64,000 nt of DNA, from positions 220,430 to 284,429 of the IMG/VR virus record IMGVR_UViG_3300030419_008158; one strand, 5' to 3'. Under the pieces are notes generated by a model. The model did not search any database and was not told the origin of the DNA. It saw nothing but the letters and a program-made list of their open reading frames with translations. Positions 20,418-63,946 of the stretch are shown piece after piece (the first letter of the stretch is position 1; each line of letters starts with the position of its first letter). The position numbers and the translations under genes are program-made.

Positions 20418-20421
20418 AAGT

Positions 20422-27308: not shown

Positions 27309-27381
27309 TACCCCCTGTCCGGTTCGAACGGACGACCTAGCGGTTAAAAGCCGCGTGCTCTACCAACTGAGCTAAGGAGGT
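27309..27381 (-). tRNA. tRNA-Lys(UUU), no encoded CCA
   Basis: ACCTCCT/AGGGGGT acceptor, loop CT-TTT-AA, T-arm GTCCG-TTCGAAC-CGGAC. Confidence 0.9.
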
Positions 27382-27387
27382 ATAAAT

Positions 27388-27602
27388 GAAGCGGGTCACC
27401 CAACATCCCGCTTCTGACACGGCCTATCCCCCTCGGCCTAACTGCGGGTTATCGCAGGTCTGCATTCTGGGTTACGCTTACGCAATCACGAGCCTGGCTT
27501 CAACCGGCATGCCACTCGCTCCATCTCGTTTATAAGATGTTAACGCTCCAAACGCTAAGCTAAGTGCCCGGTGATCTATCCAGGTCCCTTGACCCGTGTC
27601 TC
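27388..27602 (-). ncRNA. Unassigned structured ncRNA candidate in the tRNA cluster
   Basis: Closing helix GACACGG/CCGTGTC, several internal hairpins, 3' hairpin GAAGCGGG/CCCGCTTC; no credible ORF. Confidence 0.45.
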
Positions 27603-27618
27603 CCACATAACTTTATCA

Positions 27619-27797
27619 AACCCGGGGCCGGATTTGAACCGGCTACCCCACCTCGTAACGTAGATCCACTTTGCATAAGTGTTTCCAACGCAGACCCCAT
27701 CGCCACTAGTTCCGGCAGGGGCGATCTTCCCTGTTTGCTCCGGTGTGTGGATCTTTGGTTTCCTACTGGGTGCGCTCTCCCAATGAGCTACCCGGGT
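27619..27797 (-). ncRNA. tRNA-like RNA with 114-nt structured insert replacing the anticodon loop
   Basis: Acceptor ACCCGGG/CCCGGGT, D-stem GCTC/GAGC, T-arm GCCGG-TTCAAAT-CCGGC, anticodon stem CACC/GGTG. Confidence 0.8.
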
Positions 27798-27803
27798 ACA
27801 TAA

Positions 27804-27880
27804 TGGCACCCCGAACAGGATTCGAACCTGTGACCCTCGGCTTAGAAGGCCGATGCTCTATCCAGCTGAGCTATCGGGGC
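27804..27880 (-). tRNA. tRNA-Arg(UCU)
   Basis: Cloverleaf, loop CT-TCT-AA, CCA. Confidence 0.95.
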
Positions 27881-27918
27881 ATTTTTTATTTAGATTTCAA
27901 TGAGCAATCTTACAAGAT

Positions 27919-27947
27919 ATTATAACATCTTCATTGATCATTTACAT
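27919..27947 (-). promoter_or_regulatory. Sigma70-like promoter ATGTAA-N17-TATAAT (extended -10 TG)
   Basis: Matches the window-wide GTGTAA-N17-TATAAT motif; upstream of tRNA-Arg. Confidence 0.65.
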
Positions 27948-27959
27948 CTATTATATGAT

Positions 27960-28045
27960 TGGTGCGGCTGGCGGGATTCGAACCCGCATAGCTCAAAGCC
28001 GACAGATTTTAAGTCTGTTGTGTATACCAGTTCCACCACAGCCGC
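27960..28045 (-). tRNA. tRNA-Leu(UAA)
   Basis: Long variable arm, loop CT-TAA-AA, CCA. Confidence 0.95.
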
Positions 28046-32200: not shown

Positions 32201-33082
32201 CTAAGAAGTGCTAAAGTATCTTTCACCCCTATCACACAGGAGCGTTACTACGTTCCGATGCAAATTTTTCTGTAAGTATGCCCTTGCGGCAACTAAATTC
32301 GCTCCTGATGAAATTCCAACCAAAAATCCGTGTGTTTTTGCAAAATCTTGCGCTGCTTGAATCGCATCAGAAGTGCTTACTAGTATTTGATCTGGCAACT
32401 TATTTCTATCAAGCAAAAAATCCTCACCGTCATTTATTCCTTGGATTCCGTGAGATTTTGCATCCTCTTTGGGTGCCACTTGAACTACTTTGTGTATCAA
32501 GGGTGACATTATAGACTGTGATGTTACAAACTCGCTGACACCCATCAAAGTCCCTCCTGTGCCGGCACCAGAAATAAAGTCCCACTGTTCGATTTTGAGC
32601 GCTTTCATGTCAGAATCTATTTCAGGTGCTGTATAATGTCGATGAATTTCTACATTAAGATTGTTTTCAAATTGCATCGGACTCCAGTAATTTTCATTTT
32701 CGTCCACCAGCTTGTTTCTCATTTCTATTGCAGACGAAAAATCACTAGGACCCACTTCAATAACTTTGGCACCGAAACGACGCATCATCTGCTTGCGCTC
32801 TTCACTCATATTCTCAGGCATAATAATTTCTACTGGCACGCCTAACATTGCGCCGGCCGCGCTCAAAGAAATTCCTGTATTTCCGGATGTAGCTTCTACG
32901 AGGACTGATTTTTCATTAATTTCGCCGCAAGTCACTGCCCGCTTCACAGCTAAAAAAACAAACCTGTCTTTAACACTTCCTGTTTTTTGACAGAATTCTG
33001 CTTTTGCATAGAGACCCGGCTCTATCTTTAAGAGCGGTGTTTTGACGGGCTCCAAAAGGTTTTCGTATATGTCGATGCTCAA
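32201..33082 (-). CDS. cysK: Cysteine synthase (PLP)
   Basis: KAE..TGSVKDR, EATSGNTG, GAGTGGT, GISSGAN, DRGERY. Confidence 0.9.
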   Translation of the reverse strand: MSIDIYENLLEPVKTPLLKIEPGLYAKAEFCQKTGSVKDRFVFLAVKRAVTCGEINEKSVLVEATSGNTGISLSAAGAMLGVPVEIIMPENMSEERKQMMRRFGAKVIEVGPSDFSSAIEMRNKLVDENENYWSPMQFENNLNVEIHRHYTAPEIDSDMKALKIEQWDFISGAGTGGTLMGVSEFVTSQSIMSPLIHKVVQVAPKEDAKSHGIQGINDGEDFLLDRNKLPDQILVSTSDAIQAAQDFAKTHGFLVGISSGANLVAARAYLQKNLHRNVVTLLCDRGERYFSTS

Positions 33083-41969: not shown

Positions 41970-44900
41970 CTAAATAGACTCGTCTACATCAATTTTTATC
42001 ATTTCATCAGACGCTACAGGCCTTATCATTACAGCGCCCCTTATTGTTTTTGCCTCTGTTTCTTGGTCTTGAGACCTGTTCAATAAACCGCCAAAAGGCT
42101 TGAATCGATCTACGTTTGTCTGTATGTTTGTCGTAGTAGGAGGTCGATACGTAGGGAGAATTGATATTTCAAATGAATCAATGTGACCCGATCCTTTTAG
42201 TCCGGACAGATATTGATGAACTCTACGCCTAAATACTTCTATGACCGCTGAGTTGTTTTTTGCAAAAAGAATCCCTCTAGCAATGTTTCTCACATTTCGT
42301 CTAACTGTTATTAGAAGCCTTCTTATGTTGACTCTGCCAAGAGAGCTTTCTTGATCTAGCATTGTTGACTGCGAAATTACACAAACTCCGCTTAGATTTT
42401 CATCTTCGCCCGCCAACCCTTCTACGTTTGTCATGTCATCAATAATTGGATTAATATTAGCATCGATCAAAAACTGCTTATCGCTGTTGGAAAAAGTAAT
42501 GTCTGCAGAGTTTCCTCCCAACACACGACCTCGTGTATATCCCATGGGAGCTGCGTGAGGGCTAGCTAGATCGTCAGATCTAGCAATAACACCGAGGGCT
42601 GCCACTGTGGGAGGAACTGATTTTATCACTGGCGTCGTGAGATCAAAACCTATTTTTACATCTGGGAAATAGGCAGCCCCAAATGAATTATCAACAGTTC
42701 TATTGACAAACTTTGTGACAGTTTGACTTAAGTCAACAGAGTCGCTCGAGCCTGTGGTCACATATTCAATACCTGAATCATATTGTTCAATGTCAGAAAT
42801 AAACAAACAGTCAAATTTACTTTGAGCTGCTTCGAGGGCTGTGTCTATGACTGCTCTATGCCTAATTCCCGGAACTGCAAACACAGACATATCAGCTTCA
42901 GATTTTTCCTTCAAAATATTGATTGCTGCATTATACGCTGCTGTAGAAGAAGCTGATTTTCCGGAAATATTTGTATCGTATCTCTCTCTATAGATAGAGG
43001 TGTCTGACATTTTTTTGCCTTCTTCATCGAACAAATTTAAACCGTCAAACCCACCCAACATAGGCACACAAAATTTCAAAAACTTTCTACACAAATCGTC
43101 TTTGAGATCCTCAGCTGGATCAATAAACCGAACTTTGTCTGTTGTGTCAGGTGGGTTTGTTCTATAGAGAGAGCTTGGCAGTTTTCCATTTCTTATGTAG
43201 ACAGCAGCAGGCCACTCAGCATAGTCTGGAAGAAGAGCATTTGGGTCTTTTGGAATTGGGTTGCTCGATCCTGTTATTACAGCAATCCTCTCAAGCGTAA
43301 ACATATTGTTGTTGTAGCGGTCAGCGTCTAAAACAGTCCCACCCACATCTGCAGTCCCATGATTGTCACCGACCCATGGATTCTGAAAGGTTGTATGAAA
43401 ACTAGGAAAAAATTCAAGCAAATTCAAAGATGTGTGGTCGCTTTGTTGTGTAAGGACCGGGCCTGCGCTGGGTGTGCCTATCCTTTCATATCTGGTGCCC
43501 CACGGAATATTGTCAGAATTTGTTAAAGATAGAGAACTTACTCCCGGAGCGCCTGTAGAAAGACGATTTCTCATAGGTAGCGGAGGTTGAACAGTGCGAC
43601 GAAGGTCATCTACGCTCGGCATCAGCCCTTCGTAAGTTGCTGCATTTGTCACACCTAGAGATGCCTGCCTACCAAAACTCCCGGTCAGAATGCTTGTGCT
43701 GCTTCCAGAAGTCACCAGATGATGAATTCCTCTGAATCCGGAAGGAACTGCATCTTTCGGAACTCTATCATTAAGGACATCTTTAGAAACTTCAACCCTA
43801 ACCAGCTGTGTCTGCAGCAAAGAATTTCCTACTACAACAGTTTTTCTTCCGCGCACATCTGCATCAAAGTCATAAAAAGAATGTCTATCTCCTACAACAT
43901 TAGAGATAAAATTCAAAGAGCTTGGATTTAGACTACAATTTGCAAACGTATGCAGTGCTGTCTGTGTGTATAGCGGATCAGTGCTCGAGTAAACTTCTAT
44001 GTCAAAAGACGCATATCCGTCCTCGGTTTGTGACCCAGGAACTATATTAGAAACAATAAATTTATAATTTCTTGATCCTTCACCATCAGAAAAGGATCTG
44101 AGCCTGAACAAGTCAAATCTTCGTGACCCTATTTTTTGTGACATTACAAAGGGTGAAAAAGCTCCAGAAAATCTATCTTCAAAATTTTCAAAATTTGGCA
44201 CACCGATGGTATTTTCTGCAGTATTAGTTGCACTTCCTGCATTTCTAGATAGAGAAGAAGTAAGTAACAGCCCTATGGGCTCAGTGCCGTCCCATGTTGA
44301 GCTGCCTAGCGCTAAGGTATCTGTAATAACACCCGATCCCGTGACCACAGCAAACGTATCCGGTATGTCATAGTATGTGTAAAGATAGTGACCAGCTTCT
44401 TGAATTTTGTAAGGATCTCTATTGAAAACGTTGGGAAAATACATACTGTCTGCTTCGCTTTTTCCATTAGGAAGTGAAGCATCAGAAAGACCGGAAACAG
44501 CAAGGTCGTTATAAGACCCTTGCATAGAAAAGGATGCCGTTATAGCACTTGGGTTCTCTGTTGTTGATGTATGGCCATTCAAGACCAAAACAAATGTTGA
44601 TGTTTGCTGTTTCAAACCGTAAACAGACCCAACACCGCTACCACCGTCTAGAGCTGAACCGTCCGCAGCAACACCGTACTCTCCAAATGAGGTCTCTGAC
44701 GGCTCGTTGTAATTAGACAGATGAAGATTTAGAGACAAATTGACCCCAGAAGGTGAAAATAATACTCCTCTTACAATAGGAACAGATTTATTTTCTCCGA
44801 CTGTCTGGAGCCCTGCATCGCTAAAAAATGTTGATCCATTAGATTCTGACATCATTGCGGCTAAAAAATATGCTCTTCCGGGTGGCCCTAACGATCCTGC

Positions 44901-45314
44901 GTATGGATTGGTTCCGACAAGGTTAGTAGCTGTATTTATCAACTCTTGGCCGGCCACAAAACCTGCATTATTTACTCTGCCCTGATTTTCTCCTGACTCT
45001 AGACGGCTTTTACAGTCTCCGGCGCCCAAAGTTCGAAAATAGACAACAGATGTTCCGTTGTTCTTGAAATATCTATCAGCTGCCAGCATGCCATAGTGAT
45101 CATTAGTAAGAGCTTCCGCTGTTGACCCGAAAACCTTTTCAAAATCACCAATAGACGCGATATCAAAAGGAACAAAAGCAGGCCCTTGTACTGCTGTACC
45201 AACTATTGCAGCAGGTGGGGGATTATTTCCAGGTTGGGCCAGCACTGTAGTCGCATTAACTGCCACAGTATTTGAAACGACATCAGGAAATTTTGGTGTT
45301 TTGTTTTTCGACAT
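41970..45314 (-). CDS. Contractile tail sheath protein
   Basis: IVGTAVQGPAFVP...FEKVFG; AAYFPD; APMGYTRG; INPI; RVNIRRLL. Confidence 0.85.
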   Translation of the reverse strand: MSKNKTPKFPDVVSNTVAVNATTVLAQPGNNPPPAAIVGTAVQGPAFVPFDIASIGDFEKVFGSTAEALTNDHYGMLAADRYFKNNGTSVVYFRTLGAGDCKSRLESGENQGRVNNAGFVAGQELINTATNLVGTNPYAGSLGPPGRAYFLAAMMSESNGSTFFSDAGLQTVGENKSVPIVRGVLFSPSGVNLSLNLHLSNYNEPSETSFGEYGVAADGSALDGGSGVGSVYGLKQQTSTFVLVLNGHTSTTENPSAITASFSMQGSYNDLAVSGLSDASLPNGKSEADSMYFPNVFNRDPYKIQEAGHYLYTYYDIPDTFAVVTGSGVITDTLALGSSTWDGTEPIGLLLTSSLSRNAGSATNTAENTIGVPNFENFEDRFSGAFSPFVMSQKIGSRRFDLFRLRSFSDGEGSRNYKFIVSNIVPGSQTEDGYASFDIEVYSSTDPLYTQTALHTFANCSLNPSSLNFISNVVGDRHSFYDFDADVRGRKTVVVGNSLLQTQLVRVEVSKDVLNDRVPKDAVPSGFRGIHHLVTSGSSTSILTGSFGRQASLGVTNAATYEGLMPSVDDLRRTVQPPLPMRNRLSTGAPGVSSLSLTNSDNIPWGTRYERIGTPSAGPVLTQQSDHTSLNLLEFFPSFHTTFQNPWVGDNHGTADVGGTVLDADRYNNNMFTLERIAVITGSSNPIPKDPNALLPDYAEWPAAVYIRNGKLPSSLYRTNPPDTTDKVRFIDPAEDLKDDLCRKFLKFCVPMLGGFDGLNLFDEEGKKMSDTSIYRERYDTNISGKSASSTAAYNAAINILKEKSEADMSVFAVPGIRHRAVIDTALEAAQSKFDCLFISDIEQYDSGIEYVTTGSSDSVDLSQTVTKFVNRTVDNSFGAAYFPDVKIGFDLTTPVIKSVPPTVAALGVIARSDDLASPHAAPMGYTRGRVLGGNSADITFSNSDKQFLIDANINPIIDDMTNVEGLAGEDENLSGVCVISQSTMLDQESSLGRVNIRRLLITVRRNVRNIARGILFAKNNSAVIEVFRRRVHQYLSGLKGSGHIDSFEISILPTYRPPTTTNIQTNVDRFKPFGGLLNRSQDQETEAKTIRGAVMIRPVASDEMIKIDVDESI

Positions 45315-53120: not shown

Positions 53121-53897
53121 TTAATATCTTCCTCCGCGGTCAGCTGGGTGTACCCAGCTAGGATCTACTTCACCGTTTCCGAATAGTTTCGGACGATGAG
53201 CATCTATAGCAATAGAGTATTCGTCATTGCCCCAATCACGCAGAGTTTTGTCTTTGCGTGGGTCGTATCCATCGTCTCCCGGATACTGCCAATTTCCACT
53301 TTCAGGATCTTTGTGTCCCGGACGGCTTTCGGCGAGCAAAGCTTCACGGATCACTCGTCTTAGTTGCTTCTTGGAAACTTTTACTCTTTTGCCTTCTTGA
53401 AATCCGTCGACTGTTCTGGCATCATACTTTGACTTTAACCAGCTAGCTAGCTTTTCATTAATGTCTGGAATGTCATCCTCATCTGACAATCCTTCTAGAG
53501 AATCGAGAGCGACGTTAAGAAAGTTATCCTCGACCGTGTCATCCACAATAGCAGCGACTTCGTCATCGACGTTTAGTTTGTCAAGCATCGTATCAGTCTT
53601 CTTATCATCAGGAGCAGAATACATACTCTTTAACGTCTGTGCTAGAGACAAAGCAGTGCCAGCGCCTGGAACGATATCAGCCAAAGCCCCTATTCCGAGA
53701 TCCTTTAACCCTTCGATACCCAACTTCGCTCTTTTTTCGCTCTGTAGCGTCTTAATTATTTTTCGAAGATCCCCGACCTTTCTGATCTGAGGGTCTACAT
53801 CCATCTCGTCAGCTAAGCGCTCCCAGTTGATTTCGTTGAGGAAACGTGCCTTCTCTTCTCTGATGATTCGTCTTAGTTGTCTTTTTGTTACTTTCAC
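53121..53897 (-). CDS. Class B leader cargo polyprotein (two leaders)
   Basis: VKVTKRQLRRIIREE...FLNE; FQE|GKRVKVSKKQLRRVIRE; middle domain paralogous to the C-domain of 3128..4345. Confidence 0.75.
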   Translation of the reverse strand: MKVTKRQLRRIIREEKARFLNEINWERLADEMDVDPQIRKVGDLRKIIKTLQSEKRAKLGIEGLKDLGIGALADIVPGAGTALSLAQTLKSMYSAPDDKKTDTMLDKLNVDDEVAAIVDDTVEDNFLNVALDSLEGLSDEDDIPDINEKLASWLKSKYDARTVDGFQEGKRVKVSKKQLRRVIREALLAESRPGHKDPESGNWQYPGDDGYDPRKDKTLRDWGNDEYSIAIDAHRPKLFGNGEVDPSWVHPADRGGRY

Positions 53898-54601
53898 TAC
53901 CAGCTTCCTCCCTCGGATTTCGCATGATTGAAGCCCATAGACCACCACTCGTAATTTTCGTCCTCTGGCATTGTATCATAGCCAGCGCCTCCATGGCTGC
54001 CAGCCTCATAGCCCACATCAAACCAGGCTTGTTGGTTTTTGGTCAAGCCTCTCTTGGGATTATCACCATAATAAGATCCATACTCTTTGAGTGCATTACC
54101 CATAATTGCCATGGCAAATTTACGCGTTGCCAGCGACTCAAAGGGCACTATAGATTCAAGTAGCCTTGACTTTTCTTCTTTGATGATTCTTCTTAGCTGC
54201 TTCTTGGTAATCTTTATTTTTGATTCTCCCATCATAACAGCTCTTTCTGCTTGTTGCACTTTGATTTCATGGCTAATATCTGAAACCCTCAGACCAAATG
54301 CGTCAGCTATCATAACCTTGTATGCTTCTCGCTTTGGGTCCTCTACGATATAAGATGCCACAACGGAGGAAGCTGATGGCGTTATGTGTCCGTTCTCTTC
54401 TGCCCACGCTACATAGTCATCGACGGGATCAAACCCACCGTCGTCCTGAACTCCCCCTATAGGCGCGTCGCCGGTTGGGTTATCACGATATCGCTCGTAG
54501 TCTCCAGGAACAGTTGGGTCGTAAGGTCGTCCACCATACTCCTCGAGCCTGGCTTTCTCTTCTCTAATGATTCTTCTTAGCTGCTTCTTAGTAATCTTCA
54601 T
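53897..54601 (-). CDS. Class B leader cargo polyprotein (two leaders)
   Basis: MKITKKQLRRIIREE; MGE|SKIKITKKQLRRIIKEE. Confidence 0.75.
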   Translation of the reverse strand: MKITKKQLRRIIREEKARLEEYGGRPYDPTVPGDYERYRDNPTGDAPIGGVQDDGGFDPVDDYVAWAEENGHITPSASSVVASYIVEDPKREAYKVMIADAFGLRVSDISHEIKVQQAERAVMMGESKIKITKKQLRRIIKEEKSRLLESIVPFESLATRKFAMAIMGNALKEYGSYYGDNPKRGLTKNQQAWFDVGYEAGSHGGAGYDTMPEDENYEWWSMGFNHAKSEGGSW

Positions 54602-54974
54602 TTTCACCTCTTATCCAGGCACCTATCTCATAGGGAATCTGTTCACGAACCAGTGTGTCTAGACGTTGATATTTGTCTATTAGTTTGCGACTTGGCTTGC
54701 CCACAGCAGACATGTCATGAAGTGCTGCACTGAAAACCGCCTCTAAATCTCTAGCATCGGCCTCGTACCCATCATCAAGGAACATCTCAATCGCATATTG
54801 CATCTCATCAATGGCTGACTCACTGAATTCGCCATCATCTTCTACGCTGCTCAACCTAGCATCGGTATCTGGAAAGTATGTCTGCTTTATCTTGCCAGGT
54901 GCGCGTAACATCGGTGCTTCGCGGAGAAGTTCTTCTTTGATGATTCTTCTAAGCTGTCTCTTTGTGACTTTCAT
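54588..54974 (-). CDS. Class B leader cargo protein
   Basis: MKVTKRQLRRIIKEELLRE. Confidence 0.75.
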   Translation of the reverse strand: MKVTKRQLRRIIKEELLREAPMLRAPGKIKQTYFPDTDARLSSVEDDGEFSESAIDEMQYAIEMFLDDGYEADARDLEAVFSAALHDMSAVGKPSRKLIDKYQRLDTLVREQIPYEIGAWIRGENEDY

Positions 54975-55303
54975 GATCTGTCCTTGTGATTTGGGTTGAT
55001 GACGCCCGTGTAGATTATAAGGGCGCCCATGCCCGCTTTGTGGATTTCGGCGCCCATCATGCGCTCAGCTTCCGCAGCGATATCCGGATCGTTTGTAAAG
55101 AAAATTAGTTCGCCACTGGGTTCATACTCACCATGTAGATGATTGTGTTCAGCCCAATCCATCCATTGTTGTTCTGAAGTGGCTTGGCGTGAAGAAGGAG
55201 ACGCACCTAGTTTGTGACCGCCTACCGATGCTGCTCCATGGCCGGTGTAGCCCTTAACGATCTCAGATATAATGCCCCTAAGTTGTCGCTTCGTGATTTT
55301 CAT
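54971..55303 (-). CDS. Class B leader cargo protein
   Basis: MKITKRQLRGIISE. Confidence 0.75.
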   Translation of the reverse strand: MKITKRQLRGIISEIVKGYTGHGAASVGGHKLGASPSSRQATSEQQWMDWAEHNHLHGEYEPSGELIFFTNDPDIAAEAERMMGAEIHKAGMGALIIYTGVINPNHKDRS

Positions 55304-55569
55304 TCTGTATATTCCGGATGCTCTAAGGCTTCGATCGCTGCTATCACTGCGTTCATAGATTCCTTATTGCCTGTGTTTCTCGCTAAAATAGAAAGCGCTT
55401 TCTTTAGGTGCGGAAGCGCCTCCGCCGGGTCGTGCCCACCAAAAAAACCCTCGGTGTCCAGCCTGGCTAGCCGCCTAGCTTCATCACGCTCGGCAGGTGT
55501 TACTTCAGAAAGCAACCTGGACCTCTCTTCTTTGATGATTCTTCTAAGACGACTTTTTGAAATTTTCAT
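55300..55569 (-). CDS. Class B leader cargo protein
   Basis: MKISKSRLRRIIKEERSRLLSE. Confidence 0.75.
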   Translation of the reverse strand: MKISKSRLRRIIKEERSRLLSEVTPAERDEARRLARLDTEGFFGGHDPAEALPHLKKALSILARNTGNKESMNAVIAAIEALEHPEYTE

Positions 55570-55580
55570 TTTAGATGTCC

Positions 55581-55871
55581 CTAGTCCAAATCAGCTAACA
55601 TGTATCGATACCCTATACTGTCCAAGAATTCACCAAAAACTTCAGTAACAGCGGCTACAGCCATTTCTTCAGCCTCTTCTTCCATAAGACCTTCTTCAGC
55701 TATGAAGTCATTAACAGCGTTTGTGTATAGATGCGTCATTAATGTTTTAGATCTTTCAGCCATGTTGTTGTCTATAAGCCCTCGTCCTCTCTCGCCGAGC
55801 GTCATCTCACTAAGGAGGCTGGCCTTCTCTTCTTTGATGATTCTTCGCAGTTGTCGTTTGGTAATTTTCAT
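55581..55871 (-). CDS. Class B leader cargo protein
   Basis: MKITKRQLRRIIKEEKASLLSE. Confidence 0.75.
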   Translation of the reverse strand: MKITKRQLRRIIKEEKASLLSEMTLGERGRGLIDNNMAERSKTLMTHLYTNAVNDFIAEEGLMEEEAEEMAVAAVTEVFGEFLDSIGYRYMLADLD

Positions 55872-56071
55872 TTTTCTAGCCTCTTGACACGTTTCAAAAG
55901 TTTCTGGATCCTAATCTCAAGTCCCTTATTTCTCTTCTCCACGGATTCAACTTGCTGCTCAAGAGCGTTGAGCCTGTACTCAGTTCCGTAGTAGAAGCCA
56001 CCGAAAGTGACTGCCAACCCACCGAGAAGGACCAACATCTTAAGATCAAGTTTCATCATGGACATACCCAC
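55868..56071 (-). CDS. Small TM + coiled-coil protein
   Basis: TM helix then heptad repeat; no leader. Confidence 0.6.
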   Translation of the reverse strand: MGMSMMKLDLKMLVLLGGLAVTFGGFYYGTEYRLNALEQQVESVEKRNKGLEIRIQKLLKRVKRLEK

Positions 56072-56484
56072 TTAGCCATCCTTTGTTGCCAGTATGGCTC
56101 AACAGTCTTTCCTGTTCTTCGATCTTTGCAACCCATTTCCTCGCCGGTAGGCTTTTTGTCTGCCCTGCTGGTGTCTACCCGACCTGAAGTGTCTATACCG
56201 GGCGTCCAGTACTCCTCGAGATCATCTTCTTTAAGCAGCGGCGCTGTATGAGCTAGATCATCAATTAGGCCTTCGTAGTCTTGAACGACAGCAAAATGGC
56301 CTAGGTCATCCATAAAGTCATCGTACAGTAGATTTTTAATCGCGCCGGCGTCGCCCATGGAGGCCAGAGCGGGATCAGAATGATAAGAAGCTGCTCTATC
56401 TGTTAGATATCTTACAACTTCTTCATGAGAAGCTGTAGCAGCTTCGCGAATGATTCTTCTAAGCTGTCTCTTTGTAATTCTCAT
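56056..56484 (-). CDS. Class B leader cargo protein
   Basis: MRITKRQLRRIIRE at ATG 56484; GATATTTA motif at 56512. Confidence 0.75.
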   Translation of the reverse strand: MRITKRQLRRIIREAATASHEEVVRYLTDRAASYHSDPALASMGDAGAIKNLLYDDFMDDLGHFAVVQDYEGLIDDLAHTAPLLKEDDLEEYWTPGIDTSGRVDTSRADKKPTGEEMGCKDRRTGKTVEPYWQQRMAKWVCP

Positions 56485-56510
56485 ATACACTCCTTTGGGC
56501 ACACTCAACA

Positions 56511-57548
56511 CTAAATATCATCATGTCTGGCATTATGATTGGTCATTCTTTCTAAAACATTTTCTACGATTCGTGCCTCATAAATCTTCTCTCTCTTGAA
56601 CTGTTTTAGATTTTTTCTAATTTTTCTCTGGAGCTTTTTTGTAAACTTTTCTTCTGGGTACTCTTCGTAATACTCTTTAAAATTGTCAGCGACCCCTACG
56701 GACTTCGCTATTTTCTGCATTTTATCAATATCTTGAGATTCTACTGCTTCTAGAGCGCTATCTATGCCGTATGTCTGTGCCAACCGCTCAGCAAACTCAT
56801 GCCCAAAAGCATCAATTTCAATATGTGATCCCAAATAATCTCTTCTGGGTGCTCCTTCGAGTGGAATAAGGCCCCAATCTTCAAGTTTCTTTTTTGCTTC
56901 CCCGCGGGAAACTCCCATGTCCCTGGAGATTGATGTGTACTGTCGATCATGCATAAGCTCATGTCGGATAGTTGCTGATATATCTTGGGCTATTTTGACA
57001 GGTTCAATTAGATTCTTGTCAAAGCTTTCATCAGCTGTTACTGCAAATAAAAGAAGAACGCCTCTGTCGCGGCCATCTAGGGCCATTTGTGCGCCGACAA
57101 CAAAGCGATTTGGGTTTGAATTATTTTGCAGCTTATTAGACCCACCTTTAATTCCTGTCTGGTCGATGCTTACGACATTAACTTCAATGGGAAGCCCTAT
57201 TTCTTTAAAGAATAAATCTAACGTGTCATCAAGTGACTCTGCTGCGTCTGTTTGCTCGACGGCGCCTAGAAATTTAGAGCTGTGAATCTCTGTGTATTCA
57301 TTATCCTCTAGATAAAACTTAGACGTCAACAGTGCATTTTCAATTCCACCATAAACATCGCGGCGGAGCGGAAGAGATTGTTCTCCTATTAAATGCATCT
57401 TCTTGTAATAGTCAGAAATTTTACGCAAAAACTTAGAGTCGTACTCATTTTCATTCCCTTCTCTGTCCAAAAACAGAGAGGTGGAACTTGCCTGGTCATA
57501 AGGCTGGTTCGAACGCATTTTATATTTTCTGCGATTGCTCTTTTTCAT
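56511..57548 (-). CDS. HExxH metallopeptidase-like protein
   Basis: IRHELMHDRQ...YL..HIEIDA, similar to 8613..9341. Confidence 0.6.
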   Translation of the reverse strand: MKKSNRRKYKMRSNQPYDQASSTSLFLDREGNENEYDSKFLRKISDYYKKMHLIGEQSLPLRRDVYGGIENALLTSKFYLEDNEYTEIHSSKFLGAVEQTDAAESLDDTLDLFFKEIGLPIEVNVVSIDQTGIKGGSNKLQNNSNPNRFVVGAQMALDGRDRGVLLLFAVTADESFDKNLIEPVKIAQDISATIRHELMHDRQYTSISRDMGVSRGEAKKKLEDWGLIPLEGAPRRDYLGSHIEIDAFGHEFAERLAQTYGIDSALEAVESQDIDKMQKIAKSVGVADNFKEYYEEYPEEKFTKKLQRKIRKNLKQFKREKIYEARIVENVLERMTNHNARHDDI

Positions 57549-57578
57549 AGATAGCTTTTAGAAGGTTCTTGGGTATTT

Positions 57579-57884
57579 CTAAGAAGTACCGCTGACTTCT
57601 GCTGCTGCCTTCTTGAGCAAGGGAATTACTTTGATAATTTCATCTCCTTGATCTAGCAAGCCAAGAAAAAGATCTGCAATTACTTTGTTTTGCTTTGCAT
57701 TTCTACCGGGTCCTGCTTTCATAGCAGCTGAAAGTACTGACTTGTTTACGTCTTTTCCCAACCCAAGCTTTGTAATAATTTTTTGCAACTCATCGGTTGC
57801 TTCTTCATCTTGCTCTATCAGATTATTTTCTACAAGATATTTTCTGACAGAGTCACGTAATTTTTCTTCTGTAATAGCAGGCAT
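57579..57884 (-). CDS. Protein with degenerate leader
   Basis: MPAITEEKLRDSVRKYLVE; GGAGG RBS; GATATTTA motif at 57910. Confidence 0.65.
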   Translation of the reverse strand: MPAITEEKLRDSVRKYLVENNLIEQDEEATDELQKIITKLGLGKDVNKSVLSAAMKAGPGRNAKQNKVIADLFLGLLDQGDEIIKVIPLLKKAAAEVSGTS

Positions 57885-57915
57885 TTGTCCCCTCCGTGCA
57901 TTGTGATTGTAAATA

Positions 57916-58854
57916 TCATGCTGCGGCTTGAAAATTCTTCTTTTCAAAGTCGAACAAGTACTTAAATACAGCTTTCTCTTTTGCTTTGGCTTCCATGGCA
58001 ACATCTACTGACTTGCCGCAAGAATTAAAGGGTTTATAATAGTAATCAGAATGTGCTGCTACAGACCTACACGTAGGATCTTCATACTTTTTCTTGCTGT
58101 TTGAGTGATGACACATTGGCCTTATACCAGCAGGCCATGTATCGTAAGCCATCAGAAATGCCTCTTCGTAAGATGTATCCTGGGGCCCGCATTCAAAATG
58201 ATGCGAATCAAAAACAATCGGCACACCCAGGCGTTTGTATACTGAGTCGTATAGCATTTTAGTTGAGTACAAATTTGGCCTGTCGTCATTTTCGACAGTA
58301 AGTCGACTGCGAACATTTTCAGGAAGTTTTTCAAAATTTCGACACCATGTGTCTAAAGCTTTTTCTCTATCACCATACGAAGCACCAATGTGAATGTTAA
58401 TCTTGGCATTGTGATTCATGGGCATGCCCATCATGTCCATCTGATCGCCGTGAATGCTTAGATCTTTTACACAATTTGAAACTACATACTCTTTGGGAGA
58501 TGCCAGGCAATTGAAAGGTCCCGGATGAAAAGAAAGACGCTGGCCTGTTTTATGAGCAAAGTCTCCGACCTTTCTTAAATTTTCTCTAATTTGCTCAATA
58601 TTGGGAAGCTGGTGCCACTCATATTCGCTAGCCCAAGGAAATAAATTAGATGTAATTCGAAAAACTTCAAAGCCGTTTGCAGAATTCCACTCTAAGATAC
58701 GCAGAAGGTCTTCTGTGTTATCAAGAGCAAGTTTTGAGGTGTAACCTAAGCCCTTAGCTTTAAATGTCTTCTGCCTCATTGTACGACTTGTAAAGACACC
58801 TTCATTTTTTTGAAGCTCAAGATTAATACAACAGTATCCAAATCGATTCGACAT
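57916..58854 (-). CDS. uvsE: UV damage endonuclease UvsE/UVDE
   Basis: FGYCCIN, FRITS.LFPW, SFHPG, NIHIG, VENDD, VFDSHH, AHSDY, MEAKAKE. Confidence 0.9.
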   Translation of the reverse strand: MSNRFGYCCINLELQKNEGVFTSRTMRQKTFKAKGLGYTSKLALDNTEDLLRILEWNSANGFEVFRITSNLFPWASEYEWHQLPNIEQIRENLRKVGDFAHKTGQRLSFHPGPFNCLASPKEYVVSNCVKDLSIHGDQMDMMGMPMNHNAKINIHIGASYGDREKALDTWCRNFEKLPENVRSRLTVENDDRPNLYSTKMLYDSVYKRLGVPIVFDSHHFECGPQDTSYEEAFLMAYDTWPAGIRPMCHHSNSKKKYEDPTCRSVAAHSDYYYKPFNSCGKSVDVAMEAKAKEKAVFKYLFDFEKKNFQAAA

Positions 58855-58935
58855 GTCCTTGCTCCTTGTAGGTACTTCAGAATTATATCATACTTAGTCT
58901 AAACAATACACAAAACTGGCAAAACAGACGAAGAA

Positions 58936-59205
58936 ATGAAAACAAAAATCAAAATTTTACTGTCGACTTTATTTATATTTTTTCTTAGTATTACAGTCAC
59001 TTCAAGTACTCATGCAAAACCGCCAAGAGCAACAAAATCAAAATTTTATGATTTCAGTGAACAACTAATTGATGGGCAAATAAAAAAACCCACCAACCTC
59101 TATATTGACACTAGGTCCAAAGTTAAATTTGAGAGGCTACTTCGACTCAAGAAATCTTTCTTGCCTAAACTATTTGACACTGCAAGAGAAAAGGTGTTCA
59201 AGTAG
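58936..59205 (+). CDS. Secreted protein resembling myxobacterial gliding protein CglF/GltF
   Basis: Signal peptide, then YDFSEQLIDGQIKKP...Y...R.K.KF..L..L..SFLPKL. Confidence 0.55.
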   Translation: MKTKIKILLSTLFIFFLSITVTSSTHAKPPRATKSKFYDFSEQLIDGQIKKPTNLYIDTRSKVKFERLLRLKKSFLPKLFDTAREKVFK

Positions 59206-59323
59206 GCTATTTTCTGCGTTTTTTGATCAAATTTGAAATAGCACAATAACACACAAAGTCAATGACAACTCCGAGCACTACACACCCAGCTAACACAGCT
59301 AATAATGACATATAATATTTTCT

Positions 59324-59944
59324 CTAGTCGTAGTACGAAGTTGTTCTCTTGACTGACTTGCGGCGCTTTCTCAAAGTTGCGCCGCCCTTCTCTAACACCT
59401 TGATAACCTTGTCGATAGTTGTTCCGGCCGCTTTTGCGCCCCTTTCGTCTACTACGAAGGTTGAATGACCTAAAGGCATTGTGCCCCACGGGGTTTCACT
59501 ATCTTCAATTTGGAAAGCTACAATCTTGCCACCCCTGCGAATAGGCTGGTAGGTCAAGTACGCTACCTCACGATCCTCGAGGCCGTCATCTATTGCTTTG
59601 AGTTCTTTTATGTTGGGCGACTTAGAAATGTTTGCTTTTCGCTCGGTGTCTTGTGCATCGGTGATCGCATAGCTGATAAGTTCAAGATCCGGGTATGGTG
59701 TAACCCCTAAGTCTGCAAGTGTGCCCCTGTCGTCTTCGTAAAAAGCATCTGCCTGATCTAAACCGTACTCGTCAATAAAAACCTGCGCAACTTTTTTGTG
59801 GTCAGCATTGCTCATTTTTGAAGGGTCTTTCGGGAGCGCAGCAACAAGCTTTTTCTCCCATGCATCCATCTCAGCCTGGCGTTCTTTCCAGGATTTTACT
59901 TGTTCTTTGATGATTCTTCTTAGATGGTTCTTAGTAACTCTCAT
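59324..59944 (-). CDS. Class B leader cargo protein
   Basis: MRVTKNHLRRIIKEQ. Confidence 0.75.
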   Translation of the reverse strand: MRVTKNHLRRIIKEQVKSWKERQAEMDAWEKKLVAALPKDPSKMSNADHKKVAQVFIDEYGLDQADAFYEDDRGTLADLGVTPYPDLELISYAITDAQDTERKANISKSPNIKELKAIDDGLEDREVAYLTYQPIRRGGKIVAFQIEDSETPWGTMPLGHSTFVVDERGAKAAGTTIDKVIKVLEKGGATLRKRRKSVKRTTSYYD

Positions 59945-60215
59945 AATCTAACACCCTCAAAACTTCTCGATGATCATCGTCAGTAATGTCATTTTTAGAC
60001 AGCTCTTCGATTATTGCTCTAATAACTGATCTTGCACCCAGCTTTCTAATTGCACTAACATACGCATCCTCAACGTCGATCTGCTTGAATTCTTCTCTTG
60101 GTTGGAATTTACCTCCACCTATAGCACCCATGATATCAGGTATGTCGGGCTGTTCCATAAGCTTAGCCTTCTCTTCTTTGATGATTCTTCTTAGTTGTCT
60201 TTTTGTGATTTTCAT
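59931..60215 (-). CDS. Class B leader cargo protein
   Basis: MKITKRQLRRIIKEEKAKLME. Confidence 0.75.
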   Translation of the reverse strand: MKITKRQLRRIIKEEKAKLMEQPDIPDIMGAIGGGKFQPREEFKQIDVEDAYVSAIRKLGARSVIRAIIEELSKNDITDDDHREVLRVLDYESY

Positions 60216-60589
60216 TAGAATCTCCACCCTGCGTCTGGTGACCATGATACTGGTATCTCAACATAGCCACTCGCCATTTGCTTTTCTATCTTGTCAATCA
60301 TAGCGTCACCAAGAGCACCAGGAACCCTTTGGCCGGATGCGATGTAAAGTGCGCTAGGCACAAAGTCAAGCTCTGTCTCGCCTCCACTCACTAGAAGGGA
60401 ATCGCCAGTGGGGCTCAATGTTATCGTGGTCTTGTAGCCCCGCTTCGAAGTTTGCTGGCTCCTTCCGAGGTACTTGTTTCCTGCCGCGGCAGGTTGTGCT
60501 TCAAACGAATCACCAGGTATCATACGGATGGGCTCATCATCCATGGCTTCTATAATGATTCTTCTAAGTTGTCTTTTTGTGATTTTCAT
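60215..60589 (-). CDS. Class B leader cargo protein
   Basis: MKITKRQLRRIIIE. Confidence 0.75.
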   Translation of the reverse strand: MKITKRQLRRIIIEAMDDEPIRMIPGDSFEAQPAAAGNKYLGRSQQTSKRGYKTTITLSPTGDSLLVSGGETELDFVPSALYIASGQRVPGALGDAMIDKIEKQMASGYVEIPVSWSPDAGWRF

Positions 60590-60915
60590 TAGTATCTCCC
60601 CGGGGCTCTGTAGCTTGACTTCTGCTTAGAATACAGGTCGTGAATCTGTTGATATACGTCAAGAGGCCAGTTGATTGCCTGACCGCTGTCATCTCGGTAT
60701 CCACCGCTGTGAATCTCGACCTCTTCTTTCATGTCAGCAGCATCACCTTCGAATTCGTAGAACGCTGTAGACAAAGCATCTGTGACACCGCCGTAAGATC
60801 TGGTTACGCCGAGCTTCTTAAGCATTGTCTTGAGACCACGTGGGTCGACACCTTCGTTCAACAGACTGATTTCTTCCTTGATGATTCTTCTTAGTTGTCT
60901 TTCTGTGATTTTCAT
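60589..60915 (-). CDS. Class B leader cargo protein
   Basis: MKITERQLRRIIKEEISLLNE. Confidence 0.75.
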   Translation of the reverse strand: MKITERQLRRIIKEEISLLNEGVDPRGLKTMLKKLGVTRSYGGVTDALSTAFYEFEGDAADMKEEVEIHSGGYRDDSGQAINWPLDVYQQIHDLYSKQKSSYRAPGRY

Positions 60916-60920
60916 AGTTT

Positions 60921-61142
60921 TTACCTTTTCGTGCCTTCTATTTCATCAGCAATATCTCGAAGTGCACTAGCTTTTTCATTCGAACGTCTAAGTCCGTAGT
61001 GTGCTAATAAAATAAAAATAGCCTTAGTAAGACCAAGCGTCAGCAATGAAGACAAATCTTCTTTCAGCAGTGTATCTGGCATTTGTTTGTCTTTGACACT
61101 TTCTGCAATAATTTTTCTCAGCTGTGATCTAGTAATCTTCAC
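60921..61142 (-). CDS. Class B leader cargo protein
   Basis: GTG 61142 VKITRSQLRKIIAE. Confidence 0.7.
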   Translation of the reverse strand: MKITRSQLRKIIAESVKDKQMPDTLLKEDLSSLLTLGLTKAIFILLAHYGLRRSNEKASALRDIADEIEGTKR

Positions 61143-61350
61143 CGACACCCCTTTTATTTTCAGCAAACGGAACAAACTCTCCTTTGCAATTGTAAATTCC
61201 CCACTTCTTGCTGTAGACTTTCTTGATAATTCTATTCAGCTTTTTCGCTGACAAGCTGTTCTTTTTAGATGCTTTTTGTTTGGGATCAATTCCTGCCCAC
61301 TTGTAATGTTCCGCTGGAATATTGATCGGAGATATCTTTTCAACTTTCAC
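61129..61350 (-). CDS. Small basic protein with degenerate internal leader
   Basis: LSAKKLNRIIKK. Confidence 0.55.
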   Translation of the reverse strand: MKVEKISPINIPAEHYKWAGIDPKQKASKKNSLSAKKLNRIIKKVYSKKWGIYNCKGEFVPFAENKRGVGEDY

Positions 61351-61589
61351 TTAGCAGCCTCATCTTTAGATTTTTTACTCCATTCCTCCTCAGGTAGAAA
61401 CTTCTCTATCTTAAACTTGAGAATGGACTTTCCGTTGATTGTAGGATGACCATCATCGTCTTCTCCTATTTTATTCACGATTGTTCGCTTGTTTTTGAAC
61501 TTACCTGTCAAAATGACATCTCCCTTCTCGATATTGAGAATGATGGCTTCTCTGATGATTCTCCTTAGATGTCGTTTTGTGATTTTCAA
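61347..61589 (-). CDS. Class B leader cargo protein
   Basis: MKITKRHLRRIIRE. Confidence 0.75.
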   Translation of the reverse strand: MKITKRHLRRIIREAIILNIEKGDVILTGKFKNKRTIVNKIGEDDDGHPTINGKSILKFKIEKFLPEEEWSKKSKDEAAK

Positions 61590-61590
61590 T

Positions 61591-61743
61591 TTACTCTTCT
61601 TTGTTCCAAGATGCTTCGGGATCTTCCATCATGTCAATCATGCTCTTTTCGAATCCTCTGGCAGCTATCCATGCACCCAGAATCATTCCAGTACCAATAC
61701 ACCCTATGAACAACAAGCCGACAAAAATTGAATCCCACGTCAT
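61591..61743 (-). CDS. Small single-TM protein (50 aa)
   Basis: Below cutoff: MTWDSIFVGLLFIGCIGTGMILGAWIAARG... Confidence 0.55.
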   Translation of the reverse strand: MTWDSIFVGLLFIGCIGTGMILGAWIAARGFEKSMIDMMEDPEASWNKEE

Positions 61744-61810
61744 TTTTTATTGCCTTTTTTGCCCGGAAAGGGTGACAAACCCTTGAGAAGTGCCTGCCAA
61801 AACGTAATCA

Positions 61811-62152
61811 TCAATCCAAGCTCCACAACATTAAAGTGCCCGGGTCGTTCCACTCTGGAGCAAACCCATAATTGTCAATAACGAACGCCTCAAAATCAGG
61901 GTGTACACCAAATATATAGGGATCCGAGTTTATATAGTAATCAAAGAGAGGCAAGCCGTCCTCAGCCTCAGGAACATTGCTTTCAGCATCGAGCCACACT
62001 CCTCCGGGAGTACCGTCAAATTCTTCAGTGGTTCTCACCCTGAGTCCGTATTTAGACTCAAGGGCGTCCATGAGCTCGTCTCTTTTGTCAACAGACATGG
62101 ATTCCAGCTCTTCTTTAATAATTCGTCTAAGTTGTCGTTGTGTGATTTTCAT
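61811..62152 (-). CDS. Class B leader cargo protein
   Basis: MKITQRQLRRIIKEELE. Confidence 0.75.
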   Translation of the reverse strand: MKITQRQLRRIIKEELESMSVDKRDELMDALESKYGLRVRTTEEFDGTPGGVWLDAESNVPEAEDGLPLFDYYINSDPYIFGVHPDFEAFVIDNYGFAPEWNDPGTLMLWSLD

Positions 62153-62466
62153 CAAACACCTCGCTTCTTCATATCATGTGCCAAGTCTGACATTTCTTCA
62201 GCGGCATCCATCAAAAGCTCTTCTAGTTTATCATATCTGGAAGTGCCGAATTTGTTACCGTCATCAAGCCACTCCGGAGGTATAGATTTTATTTTTCGAT
62301 ATTCAAAGAACATTTTGTCCAGCGCTGATCTCATGGCTTCAACCCTGTCGACCTCACCCTGATTGAGAGTCTGCTGTCTAACATCTTCTCCAGCCCGAAT
62401 CTCATTTACAAGCTTACCCTTCTCTTCTTTAACAATTCTTCTAAGTTGTTTCTTTGTGATTTTCAT
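62152..62466 (-). CDS. Class B leader cargo protein
   Basis: MKITKKQLRRIVKEEKGKLVNE. Confidence 0.75.
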   Translation of the reverse strand: MKITKKQLRRIVKEEKGKLVNEIRAGEDVRQQTLNQGEVDRVEAMRSALDKMFFEYRKIKSIPPEWLDDGNKFGTSRYDKLEELLMDAAEEMSDLAHDMKKRGV

Positions 62467-62469
62467 AAA

Positions 62470-62733
62470 CTACCGGCCTTTCATAATATTATGCTTAGTT
62501 ATAAAGTCATTAGCCCAAGCAGCCAGGCTATCGCTATCAGAGAAGAAGTCTTCGCCCAGAGCTTCTACTTCAGCAGCTAAATTGAATAACTTGCCGGCGA
62601 TGCTTTGAGGAGTGATCACTTTGCCTTGGTGGGTGCGTTCGAGCGGCCCGGGATCTGATCCTTCCAGCGCTTCGTTAAGCTTCGCCTTCTCTTCTCTAAT
62701 GATTTGTCTAAGTTGTTTGTCTGTGATTCTCAC
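62470..62733 (-). CDS. Class B leader cargo protein
   Basis: VRITDKQLRQIIREEKAKLNE. Confidence 0.75.
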   Translation of the reverse strand: MRITDKQLRQIIREEKAKLNEALEGSDPGPLERTHQGKVITPQSIAGKLFNLAAEVEALGEDFFSDSDSLAAWANDFITKHNIMKGR

Positions 62734-63413
62734 TTCTTTTTACCCTTCTTTTTCTTTTTCTTGGACTTTTTCACAACTGCCCAAGGCTTTGAAGGCGTCG
62801 CAGAATTAACTCTTGCATGTGCCCATTGGTGCTGTGACATACCTTTCCTGGAGCCAGATGAAGCCCAGGCTGCTAGACCTTTCTTGAACTCTGCATAGAC
62901 AGAACTTGGGGTGAGACCTCTCTTTTCTGCCTTCTTCTTTAGCGTCGCCTTGGTCTTTGCACTGAGCTCCTCGGAAAGAAGATTTCGAATCACTTCTCGG
63001 AGATCGGCCTCGGTCATTCTCATGTGGTGAGACTCTTTTTTAGTGTCTTTGCGAGGCTTGTTCTTAAATCCCTTTTTGGATCTTTCCTTCTTTTCCATTC
63101 TTTCTCGACGTCGATAAGCTCGAGCAATTCTCTCAGGATCTCCGCTTGCTAGGTCCTCTTTTGTTTTGTCTAGACCTTTGTCTCTTGGGCTGCCTTGTGG
63201 CGCACCGTACTGCTTTGGGTGTGGAGTATCAGATTCTTCCATACCGTGGTGAGCTTCTTTCTTACTCTTTTTGGATTTATTAATAATCCCTTTCTGAAGA
63301 TGGTCAGGTAGCTTATCTTGATCACCCTTTAGGGCTGGATCGTCGTCGTATTTTTCAGTAGACTTAGCTTCCTCTCTGATTATTCTTCTTAGTTTCTGCT
63401 TAGTCATTTTCAT
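62730..63413 (-). CDS. Class B leader polyprotein, very basic; C-module KGLAAW..SG.R......WA.ARVNS
   Basis: MKMTKQKLRRIIREE; KKE|SHHMRMTEADLREVIRNLLSEE. Confidence 0.75.
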   Translation of the reverse strand: MKMTKQKLRRIIREEAKSTEKYDDDPALKGDQDKLPDHLQKGIINKSKKSKKEAHHGMEESDTPHPKQYGAPQGSPRDKGLDKTKEDLASGDPERIARAYRRRERMEKKERSKKGFKNKPRKDTKKESHHMRMTEADLREVIRNLLSEELSAKTKATLKKKAEKRGLTPSSVYAEFKKGLAAWASSGSRKGMSQHQWAHARVNSATPSKPWAVVKKSKKKKKKGKKK

Positions 63414-63414
63414 C

Positions 63415-63690
63415 TTATTTTCCTTGCCTATACGCTTTATCTGCCTGGGAACCGACAGGAGCCATAAGTTTCTTTAATTGGTTAGAAAAAGAAAAGAAAG
63501 GATGACCGAACTCCTCGTATGCTGGATCACGTTCAGAGTACTTTACAATTTCTTCTGCAATCATTTGCGCTTTTTGAAGGTGATCAAGCATCAAATACAT
63601 CTCATCGAGAGGATTATATTCATATGCTTCTTGTAGCTTCGCCTTCTCTTCTTTGATGATTCTTTTTAGTTGTCTTTTGGTGATTCTCAT
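63415..63690 (-). CDS. Class B leader cargo protein
   Basis: MRITKRQLKRIIKEEKAKLQE. Confidence 0.75.
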   Translation of the reverse strand: MRITKRQLKRIIKEEKAKLQEAYEYNPLDEMYLMLDHLQKAQMIAEEIVKYSERDPAYEEFGHPFFSFSNQLKKLMAPVGSQADKAYRQGK

Positions 63691-63691
63691 C

Positions 63692-63946
63692 TTAGTAATC
63701 CTTTAGCGCCTTTATTTGTTTTTCTAGATCTTCTGCCGCACGAATAACCTCTGGCTTTTGATTTTGCTTGGCTTCAGTCCATATGTCCCACAGCGCAGAA
63801 GTAGCTTCAGAAATGGAATCAATTGCCCTTTGTAAGTGCTCCGAGCGATAAGCTGCACGTGCAAACATATGATCAGCCTGCTCATTGAGAAGCCTGGCCT
63901 TCTCTTCTTTGATGATTCTTCTTAATTGCCTTTTAGTAATCTTCAC
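63692..63946 (-). CDS. Class B leader cargo protein
   Basis: VKITKRQLRRIIKEEKARLLNE; GGAGG RBS. Confidence 0.75.
   Translation of the reverse strand: MKITKRQLRRIIKEEKARLLNEQADHMFARAAYRSEHLQRAIDSISEATSALWDIWTEAKQNQKPEVIRAAEDLEKQIKALKDY

Follow-up and report, generated by a model that had tools for sequence, protein, structure and literature searches.

A phage-borne GltF-like envelope adaptor gene in an uncultured marine jumbo phage and its Myxococcota relatives

Introduction

GltF, also called CglF (MXAN_4868), is a periplasmic component of the Agl-Glt gliding focal-adhesion machine of Myxococcus xanthus. It is an 89-aa protein with a signal peptide, fractionates with the envelope, localises to focal-adhesion clusters, and is needed for the correct clustering of GltD (PMC3169522). 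A published AlphaFold model makes GltF a bridge, in which its C-terminal helix lies in a crevice of the TPR protein GltC, a beta-strand pairs with the TonB-like C-terminal domain of GltG, and GltD is also touched (PMC11761067). GltF is a periplasmic adaptor and not an outer-membrane surface protein (PMC3169522, PMC11761067). Luciano et al. describe three further Glt-derived clusters in M. xanthus. G3 is nfs (nfsA-H), which serves sporulation and lacks GltI, J and K homologues, while G4 and G5 have no known function, and mutants in their gltD homologues glide normally. The Glt core is evolutionarily related to Tol/Exb systems (PMC3169522).

Phages also carry single host-derived subunits of large host machines, such as the cyanophage psbA/D1, but phage auxiliary genes are mostly metabolic. 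Here we analysed a window of 64,000 nucleotides (the whole stretch of DNA under study), which is the last 64 kb of the 284,429-bp IMG/VR virus record IMGVR_UViG_3300030419_008158 (G000). The original prediction, made from the sequence alone, was that a small secreted protein encoded on the plus strand is a phage copy of CglF/GltF, which may modulate host gliding or predation, or mask an outer-membrane Glt receptor to exclude superinfection. We find that the predicted gene and its family assignment hold. The interpretation placed on it is only partly supported, as detailed below.

Results

The gltF-like ORF encodes a small protein with a Sec-type signal peptide

The ORF translates to 89 aa without stops. 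It is one of only 32 plus-strand ORFs among about 350 in the 284-kb genome (318 are on the minus strand), and it stands alone between minus-strand genes. The N-terminus has a basic n-region, a hydrophobic h-region modelled by AlphaFold2 as a helix over residues 2-23, and a small-residue c-region ending T-H-A at residue 27. This is the layout of a Sec signal peptide, and we infer cleavage after residue 27, leaving a mature peptide of about 62 aa. There is no cysteine, so the protein is not a lipoprotein. The length, the signal peptide and the absence of a lipobox agree with what is expected for the CglF/GltF family (about 85-110 aa). The residue pattern given in the original prediction does not match the protein literally, but with two spacers shifted by one position it matches residues 39-79.

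Table 1. Positions of the gltF-like gene, its parts and other features mentioned in the text. Window positions count from the first letter of the 64,000-nt stretch; G000 is the full virus record; L numbers are the loci analysed.
Sequence	Position	Strand	Feature
Window	58936..59205	+	gltF-like ORF, 89 aa plus stop; phage-borne member of the CglF/GltF family
Window	58936..59016	+	Sec-type signal peptide, residues 1-27, with predicted cleavage after T-H-A
Window	59041..59085	+	N-terminal conserved motif of the mature peptide, residues 36-50 (KFYDF...IDG block)
Window	59110..59202	+	C-terminal helical segment, residues 59-89 (RLLRLKKSF block plus tail); predicted GltC-docking helix
Window	58855..58935		81-bp divergent intergenic region between the UvdE gene (minus strand) and the gltF-like gene (plus strand); presumed own promoter and ribosome-binding site
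Window	57916..58854	-	UvdE UV-damage endonuclease (Pfam PF03851, E 2.4e-53)
Window	11466..11829 and 12333..28045	-	tmRNA with a 13-residue tag, and eight tRNAs (Ser, Thr, Lys x2, Gly, Met, Arg, Leu)
Window	32201..33082	-	PLP-dependent enzyme (PALP family, E 6.5e-52)
Window	41970..45314	-	Very large proteins with a phage sheath C-terminal domain (three in the genome, with the next row)
G000	65131..68996		Very large proteins with a phage sheath C-terminal domain (as above)
Window	53121..63946		Small ORFs sharing an N-terminal motif (with the next row)
G000	183969..189226		Small ORFs sharing an N-terminal motif (as above)
Window	56056..56511; 59324..59944; 60589..60915		Three of these small ORFs, scanned with Pfam
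L105 (viral contig)	3..167 and 6001..6264		Two gltF-like copies about 6 kb apart
L043 (cellular locus)	7210..7359 and 8001..8207		Tandem F-like duplicates, second copy much more divergent
L046 (cellular locus)	7818..8012 and 8469..8720		Tandem F-like duplicates, second copy much more divergent
L160 (Myxococcota genome G101)	903..3770		Flagellar basal-body genes (FliF, FliE, FlgB/C-like)

The protein belongs to the CglF/GltF family

The original prediction would have failed without significant similarity to the CglF family. Performing a profile search, we find that NCBIfam NF033764 (adventurous gliding motility protein CglF) matches the protein at E 5.7e-9, with protein residues 28-83 aligned colinearly to profile positions 30-85 of 88. 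However, the score of 35.9 bits is well below the 90-bit equivalog cutoff, so the protein does not qualify as the M. xanthus-type gliding GltF itself. NF033764 gave no hit at E<=1e-3 in 14 control genomes but hit 151 of 201 Myxococcota genomes, usually at 1-3 loci each. The scores ran continuously from 100 down to 40 bits, only three genomes exceeded the cutoff, and the phage type sits at the low end. We also compared the phage-family alignment with an alignment of 12 high-scoring Myxococcota CglF sequences by hhalign, which gave a probability of 96% and E 4e-9 over 52 colinear columns, at only about 25% identity. Searches of the protein against Pfam and PHROGs found nothing; the family has only an NCBIfam model. 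In summary, the similarity to CglF is far beyond chance, and the protein is a true homologue of CglF/GltF.

The gene lies alone in a contractile-tailed jumbo phage genome

G000 is rated complete by CheckV, although it is linear with no terminal repeats. The genome encodes GroEL-, UvsX-like and PhoH-like genes, a DnaE-type polymerase, and three very large proteins (open frames of 1054-1181 aa) that each carry a phage sheath C-terminal domain, which is unusual in both size and number for a tail sheath. Eight tRNAs and a tmRNA lie in the window. A search with Terminase_6C found no match in G000, and the large terminase is probably too divergent. Searching INPHARED phages with the window DNA and with the GltF-like protein gave no match, and PolIII-alpha and the sheath-like protein found only relatives below 30% identity, so the host cannot be inferred from cultured kin.

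The gltF-like gene stands between UvdE, from which it diverges, and unknown genes, and it is the only ORF in the phage that matches anything in myxobacterial glt-type clusters. Thus, unlike its closest cellular relatives, it is not embedded in a glt-type operon after gltD and gltE and before a gltG/J-type gene. Scans for a sigma-70-like promoter and an intrinsic terminator, and folding of the 3' region, showed nothing above shuffled expectation. In another phage of the group, the gltF-like gene lies next to Fpg and HhH-GPD glycosylase genes. So it often sits among DNA-repair genes, but its position is not conserved. The PALP-family enzyme of the phage is 31% identical to the product of a gene about 4.5 kb from the gltF-like gene on the Myxococcales contig L035.

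We noticed that at least 17 otherwise unrelated small ORFs (66-275 aa) of the phage begin with the same N-terminal motif, of the form M-K-I-T-K-R-Q-L-R-R-I-I-K-E. At least 11 of them lie in the last 11 kb of the window, flanking the gltF-like gene, and none of the three scanned with Pfam had a match. A shared leader on diverse proteins suggests a targeting or packaging tag, or a recombination-prone module.

Homologues are widespread in marine phages and concentrated in Myxococcota among cells

A word-based protein search returned 891 clusters at E<=0.01. The best 120 of these are 67-107 aa long, 56-82% identical, and mostly from Tara, ENA and JGI marine data; one is named as a Global Ocean Virome protein. 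The contexts looked up for two of them are phage contigs of more than 200 kb that carry ThyX, ClpP, PolIII-alpha, sheath, GroEL and sigma-factor genes. Scanning IMG/VR, we found the gene on at least 102 viral contigs, many of 150-200 kb, with GC of 0.31-0.51. One viral contig (L105) carries two gltF-like copies.

A scan of one genome per GTDB species found 46 cellular loci, nearly all labelled Myxococcota (Myxococcales, Anaeromyxobacteraceae, Bradymonadales and Microvenator), with GC of 0.54-0.72. Identity to the phage protein is 36-75% overall and 55-75% for the closest copies over the mature part; these closest proteins come almost entirely from Myxococcota MAGs. A few GTDB bins labelled Woesearchaeota, Acidobacteriota and Enterobacteriaceae also carry the gene (L049, L021 and L033). 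The Woesearchaeota contig L049 (GC 0.32) holds only a C-terminal fragment-like match and looks like a misbinned phage contig. L033 carries a paralogous cluster of the c2 type described below, and L021 is a 1.1-kb contig holding only the F gene (identical to those of L020 and L022) and the end of a GltE-like gene; both look like misbinned Myxococcota contigs. Two cellular loci, L043 and L046, carry tandem F-like duplicates.

With the phage-family profile, Myxococcota genomes score up to 121 bits, and 57 of 201 sampled pass E<=1e-15. The phylum of the one Oligoflexia hit (probably Bdellovibrionota) reaches only 47.5 bits, in 29 of 151 genomes.

The cellular orthologues belong to a paralogous Glt-like cluster

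The above observations raised a question of which cellular gene the phage copy corresponds to. In at least 22 cellular loci with enough flank, the homologue sits directly after a GltC-like gene (172-185 bits on NF033756), a GltD-like TPR protein of about 1150 aa and a GltE-like gene (76-100 bits on NF033758), and an OMP_myx_plus beta-barrel gene lies upstream. The F gene is not always in the full cluster. A subgroup (L016, L019, L036, L040 and L042) has no GltC-, D- or E-like genes within 8 kb upstream, and two of these are followed by a GltJ-like gene.

The large Myxococcota genomes G066, G101 and G111 contain two distinct clusters. The canonical glt cluster (c1; loci L159 and L162) has GltC at 408 bits, GltE at 123, CglF at 79-91 and GltG at 424. 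The paralogous cluster (c2; loci L158, L160 and L161) has the barrel, a GltC-like protein at 182 bits, a D-like protein, an E-like protein at 76, an F-like protein at 38 on NF033764 but 84-89 on the phage profile, and then a GltJ-like protein with Zn ribbon, GYF and AgmX/PglI C-terminal domains. In genomes that hold both clusters, the canonical GltF scores 78-91 bits on NF033764, while the phage-type paralogue scores about 40 bits there. Over the c2 F proteins as a whole, the phage-family profile gives 84-121 bits, and NF033764 gives about 38-45 bits at the same loci. Every MAG locus that carries a phage-like F is of the c2 type, and its C, D and E neighbours match c2 about 1.5-3 times better than c1; for example, the D protein scores about 575 bits against c2 and about 200 against c1. 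The 10-Mb genome G101, which carries both clusters, also encodes flagellar basal-body genes a few kb from its c2 cluster, next to a sigma-54 activator.

Thus, the cellular orthologues of the phage gene are the F subunit of the paralogous cluster and not of the canonical gliding operon, and in this point the original prediction needs correction. We considered whether c2 could be the sporulation cluster nfs and rejected this identity, because c2 carries a GltJ-like gene, which nfs lacks. On the same ground we infer that c2 corresponds to G4 or G5. In the lineages closest to the phage copies, NF033764 finds no higher-scoring F protein, and there c2 may be the only Glt-like machine.

The mature peptide is conserved and under purifying selection in phages

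Aligning 40 homologues, we found a variable but always hydrophobic N-terminus followed by small residues and then an almost frozen mature peptide, in which 26 of about 56 positions are invariant. The invariant columns include K36, F37, Y38, D39, F40, Q43, I45, D46 and G47 of the N-terminal motif. This motif aligns with the M. xanthus GltF segment that the published model pairs with the GltG TonB-like C-terminal domain (PMC11761067), the numbering offset between the two proteins being our inference.

We next compared the core codons of 74 distinct viral and 32 distinct cellular copies. GC3 is 0.34 in viral and 0.88 in cellular copies, and it is 0.36 for the gene of the window. Median pS is 0.87 (saturated) in viral and 0.579 in cellular copies, median pN is 0.21 and 0.188, and dN/dS of unsaturated pairs is about 0.12 and about 0.19, respectively. 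The gene has therefore been in phage genomes for a long time and is kept by selection. Being host-derived, on a viral genome, of viral composition and under selection, it fits the description of a phage auxiliary or moron gene. The phage and cell consensus sequences differ mainly at residues 77-80 and 86, in the C-terminal helix, although the closest cellular copies (L006, L007, L008 and L017) share part of this phage-type tail.

A tree of the 58-column core nests the viral copies inside Myxococcota diversity, with a few cellular copies among them (L006, L007, L014, L035 and L046). The free tree needs 4 virus/cell changes, and cellular L035 nests in a starred viral subclade. However, the resolution is poor and the AU test does not reject a single viral clade (p-AU 0.67), so we make no claim about single versus multiple acquisition or about the direction of transfer.

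Models of the phage protein alone and with a GltC-like protein

On its own, the mature part is modelled with low-to-moderate confidence (mean pLDDT 71), with a short hairpin at 44-49 and helices at 59-75 and 77-81. This is consistent with a peptide that is largely unstructured alone and folds on its partner. We then modelled phage residues 28-89 with the c2-type GltC-like protein of L007, a Myxococcota MAG locus. This MAG was chosen because its F protein is the most similar to that of the window (75%) and because its tmRNA tag resembles that of the phage. The complex, folded without alignments, gave ipSAE 0.85 in each of three runs, against 0.00 for the best of three controls. The runs agreed in at least 85% of contacts, and the partner pLDDT was 64. 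In the calibration of the method, this mark was reached by 51 of 78 solved complexes and 2 of 108 mismatched pairs. The result shows likeness to a binder and not binding.

The modelled interface uses phage residues 36-41, 43-50, 67-68, 71-76 and 78-89, with the lowest expected errors at 75-88, and TPR residues 237-564. Twenty of the 26 invariant residues fall inside it, and six (P52, T53, L55, Y56, R60 and F65) lie outside. The pose agrees with the published model in which the GltF C-terminal helix sits in a GltC crevice (PMC11761067). No GltC-GltF structure is known to us to have been solved, so recall from a known structure is unlikely.

Indirect evidence on the host

The evidence for Myxococcota as hosts is indirect. 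The F subunit reaches high scores only in Myxococcota, as compared with the other phylum sampled. In addition, the phage tmRNA tag has the same length as the tag of the L007 MAG and shares its first six and last four residues, while four other Myxococcota tags are shorter variants. Against this, the GC gap is large, about 0.42 for the phage against 0.54-0.72 for the cellular loci. We looked for low-GC hosts among the best-scoring small Myxococcota genomes, but these were loci already in our set, with GC of 0.54-0.66. Such gaps occur in jumbo phages with their own replication and transcription genes, for example phiKZ against Pseudomonas aeruginosa. The gap therefore weakens the assignment but does not exclude it.

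Discussion

Our analysis establishes the homology to the CglF/GltF family, the location on a phage genome, strong purifying selection, orthology to the F subunit of the c2 cluster, and a complex model that passes its controls. That the protein is exported to the host periplasm, that it binds there, whether it supports or disturbs the host machine, and what the c2 machine does, gliding or something else, are inferences. A role in gliding or predation, as originally proposed, is therefore also an inference. Since GltF is periplasmic, the proposed masking of an outer-membrane receptor is not directly supported and could only work indirectly, as a form of the interference reading below.

We assume that the gene encodes a phage-made, Sec-exported copy of the small periplasmic F adaptor of a Glt-type trans-envelope machine of Myxococcota. 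In this view, the mature peptide would dock its C-terminal helix and its KFYDF/IDG motif onto the GltC-like TPR protein of the host and, by analogy with M. xanthus GltF, would also bind the TonB-like C-terminal domain of the GltG/GltJ-like inner-membrane protein. As the phage copy keeps both motifs at full length, we think it most likely works as a functional subunit, replacing or topping up a limiting and probably short-lived host component so that the machine keeps running after host gene expression declines. This is the logic of cyanophage psbA, a phage auxiliary gene that replaces a labile host subunit. The carriage of this one cheap Glt-like gene alone is as expected if a single bottleneck subunit is supplied. 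We hold this reading at roughly even confidence, as it rests on sequence and models, and the lability of the F subunit is an analogy.

The main rival, less likely but possible, is interference. An adaptor made in excess can uncouple the two partners that it normally bridges, so full-length conservation fits interference as well as support. The phage protein might saturate the GltC-like and GltG/J-like partners separately, or bind GltC with altered affinity, and so uncouple or freeze the machine. The consequence could be immobilisation, envelope remodelling, or superinfection exclusion if related phages need the working machine or its outer-membrane platform for entry. The isolated, oppositely oriented, moron-like gene with its own intergenic region is consistent with this, and so are the systematic phage-versus-cell differences at residues 77-80 and 86 inside the modelled GltC-binding helix, which could mean altered rather than equivalent binding. 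The need of GltF for GltD clustering suggests that its stoichiometry probably matters (PMC3169522). However, a pure competitor would need only one of the two constrained motifs, the tail substitutions are not exclusive to phages, and there is no evidence that these phages use Glt components as receptors.

It is unlikely that the peptide was recruited to a different periplasmic target or role, such as lysis, envelope integrity or DNA entry through TonB/Tol-like energy transduction, with its resemblance to GltF reflecting ancestry only. The six invariant residues outside the modelled interface could serve another partner, and the Glt core is related to Tol/Exb systems (PMC3169522). But these six residues are equally conserved in the cellular copies, and 55-75% identity to cellular F subunits with the same invariant positions is hard to reconcile with a change of partner. 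Cellular contamination, a chimeric assembly or a chance match is effectively refuted, despite the linear record without terminal repeats and the oddly labelled GTDB bins. The GC3 of the gene matches the phage and not the cells, the flanking genes are shared with other large viral contigs, the same gene is embedded in more than 100 viral contigs, next to ThyX, ClpP, PolIII-alpha, sheath, GroEL and similar genes, and the E-values and control genomes exclude chance.

If these readings are right, a large, uncultured clade of marine jumbo phages (roughly 150-290 kb) infects Myxococcota and manipulates a Glt-type focal-adhesion or trans-envelope machine with a phage-encoded F adaptor. We put this forward tentatively, at slightly less than even likelihood. 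It would be the first viral gene known to plug into this class of bacterial motor complexes, and the first functional handle on a Glt-like machine whose role has been unknown since 2011, so that a small, portable phage protein could be used to probe it. A conserved viral copy of a structural adaptor of a motility-type envelope machine would extend host takeover to bacterial mechanical machines. The gene also gives a testable host assignment for more than 100 uncultured marine jumbo-phage contigs that have no cultured relatives. The extreme conservation of a peptide of about 56 aa in both phages and cells pinpoints residues that probably form the GltC and GltG/J contacts, which are so far only modelled in M. 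xanthus. In the literature that we searched, no phage-encoded gliding, Glt or Cgl component was reported, and the 2026 myxophage CRISPR preprint does not mention GltF. The protein family and phage copies of host subunits are already known. What is new is their combination, a viral subfamily of a motility-machine adaptor that is widespread in marine jumbo phages and is predicted to act on a Glt paralogue of unknown function.

Compared with cyanophage psbA/D1, the gltF-like gene is likewise a single host-derived subunit of a large host machine, widespread in marine phages, with ameliorated codon usage and strong purifying selection, and no other part of the machine is carried. The putative target, however, is an envelope-spanning mechanical machine and not a metabolic complex, and rapid turnover of the F subunit is an assumption here. 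NfsF of the M. xanthus spore-coat machine belongs to the same set of Glt-derived machines, and the contiguous A-to-H order of nfs resembles the contiguous c2 order (PMC3169522). But nfs genes are the closest homologues of glt, whereas the c2 F is the most divergent paralogue on NF033764.

M. xanthus GltF and the phage protein have the same size, colinear conserved motifs (YDF, G, P, R, L..[IL][RK]..F), a mostly disordered chain with a C-terminal helix, and a predicted docking of that helix into a GltC-type TPR protein. They differ in their low profile-level identity, and the phage gene stands alone instead of in a gltD-E-F-G-H operon. The nearest cellular kin is the F-like subunit of the c2 cluster of Myxococcota, from which the phage copies differ by their AT-rich codons, the loss of all neighbouring Glt genes and the tail positions 77-80 and 86, while they share 55-75% identity over the mature peptide and the same invariant residues.
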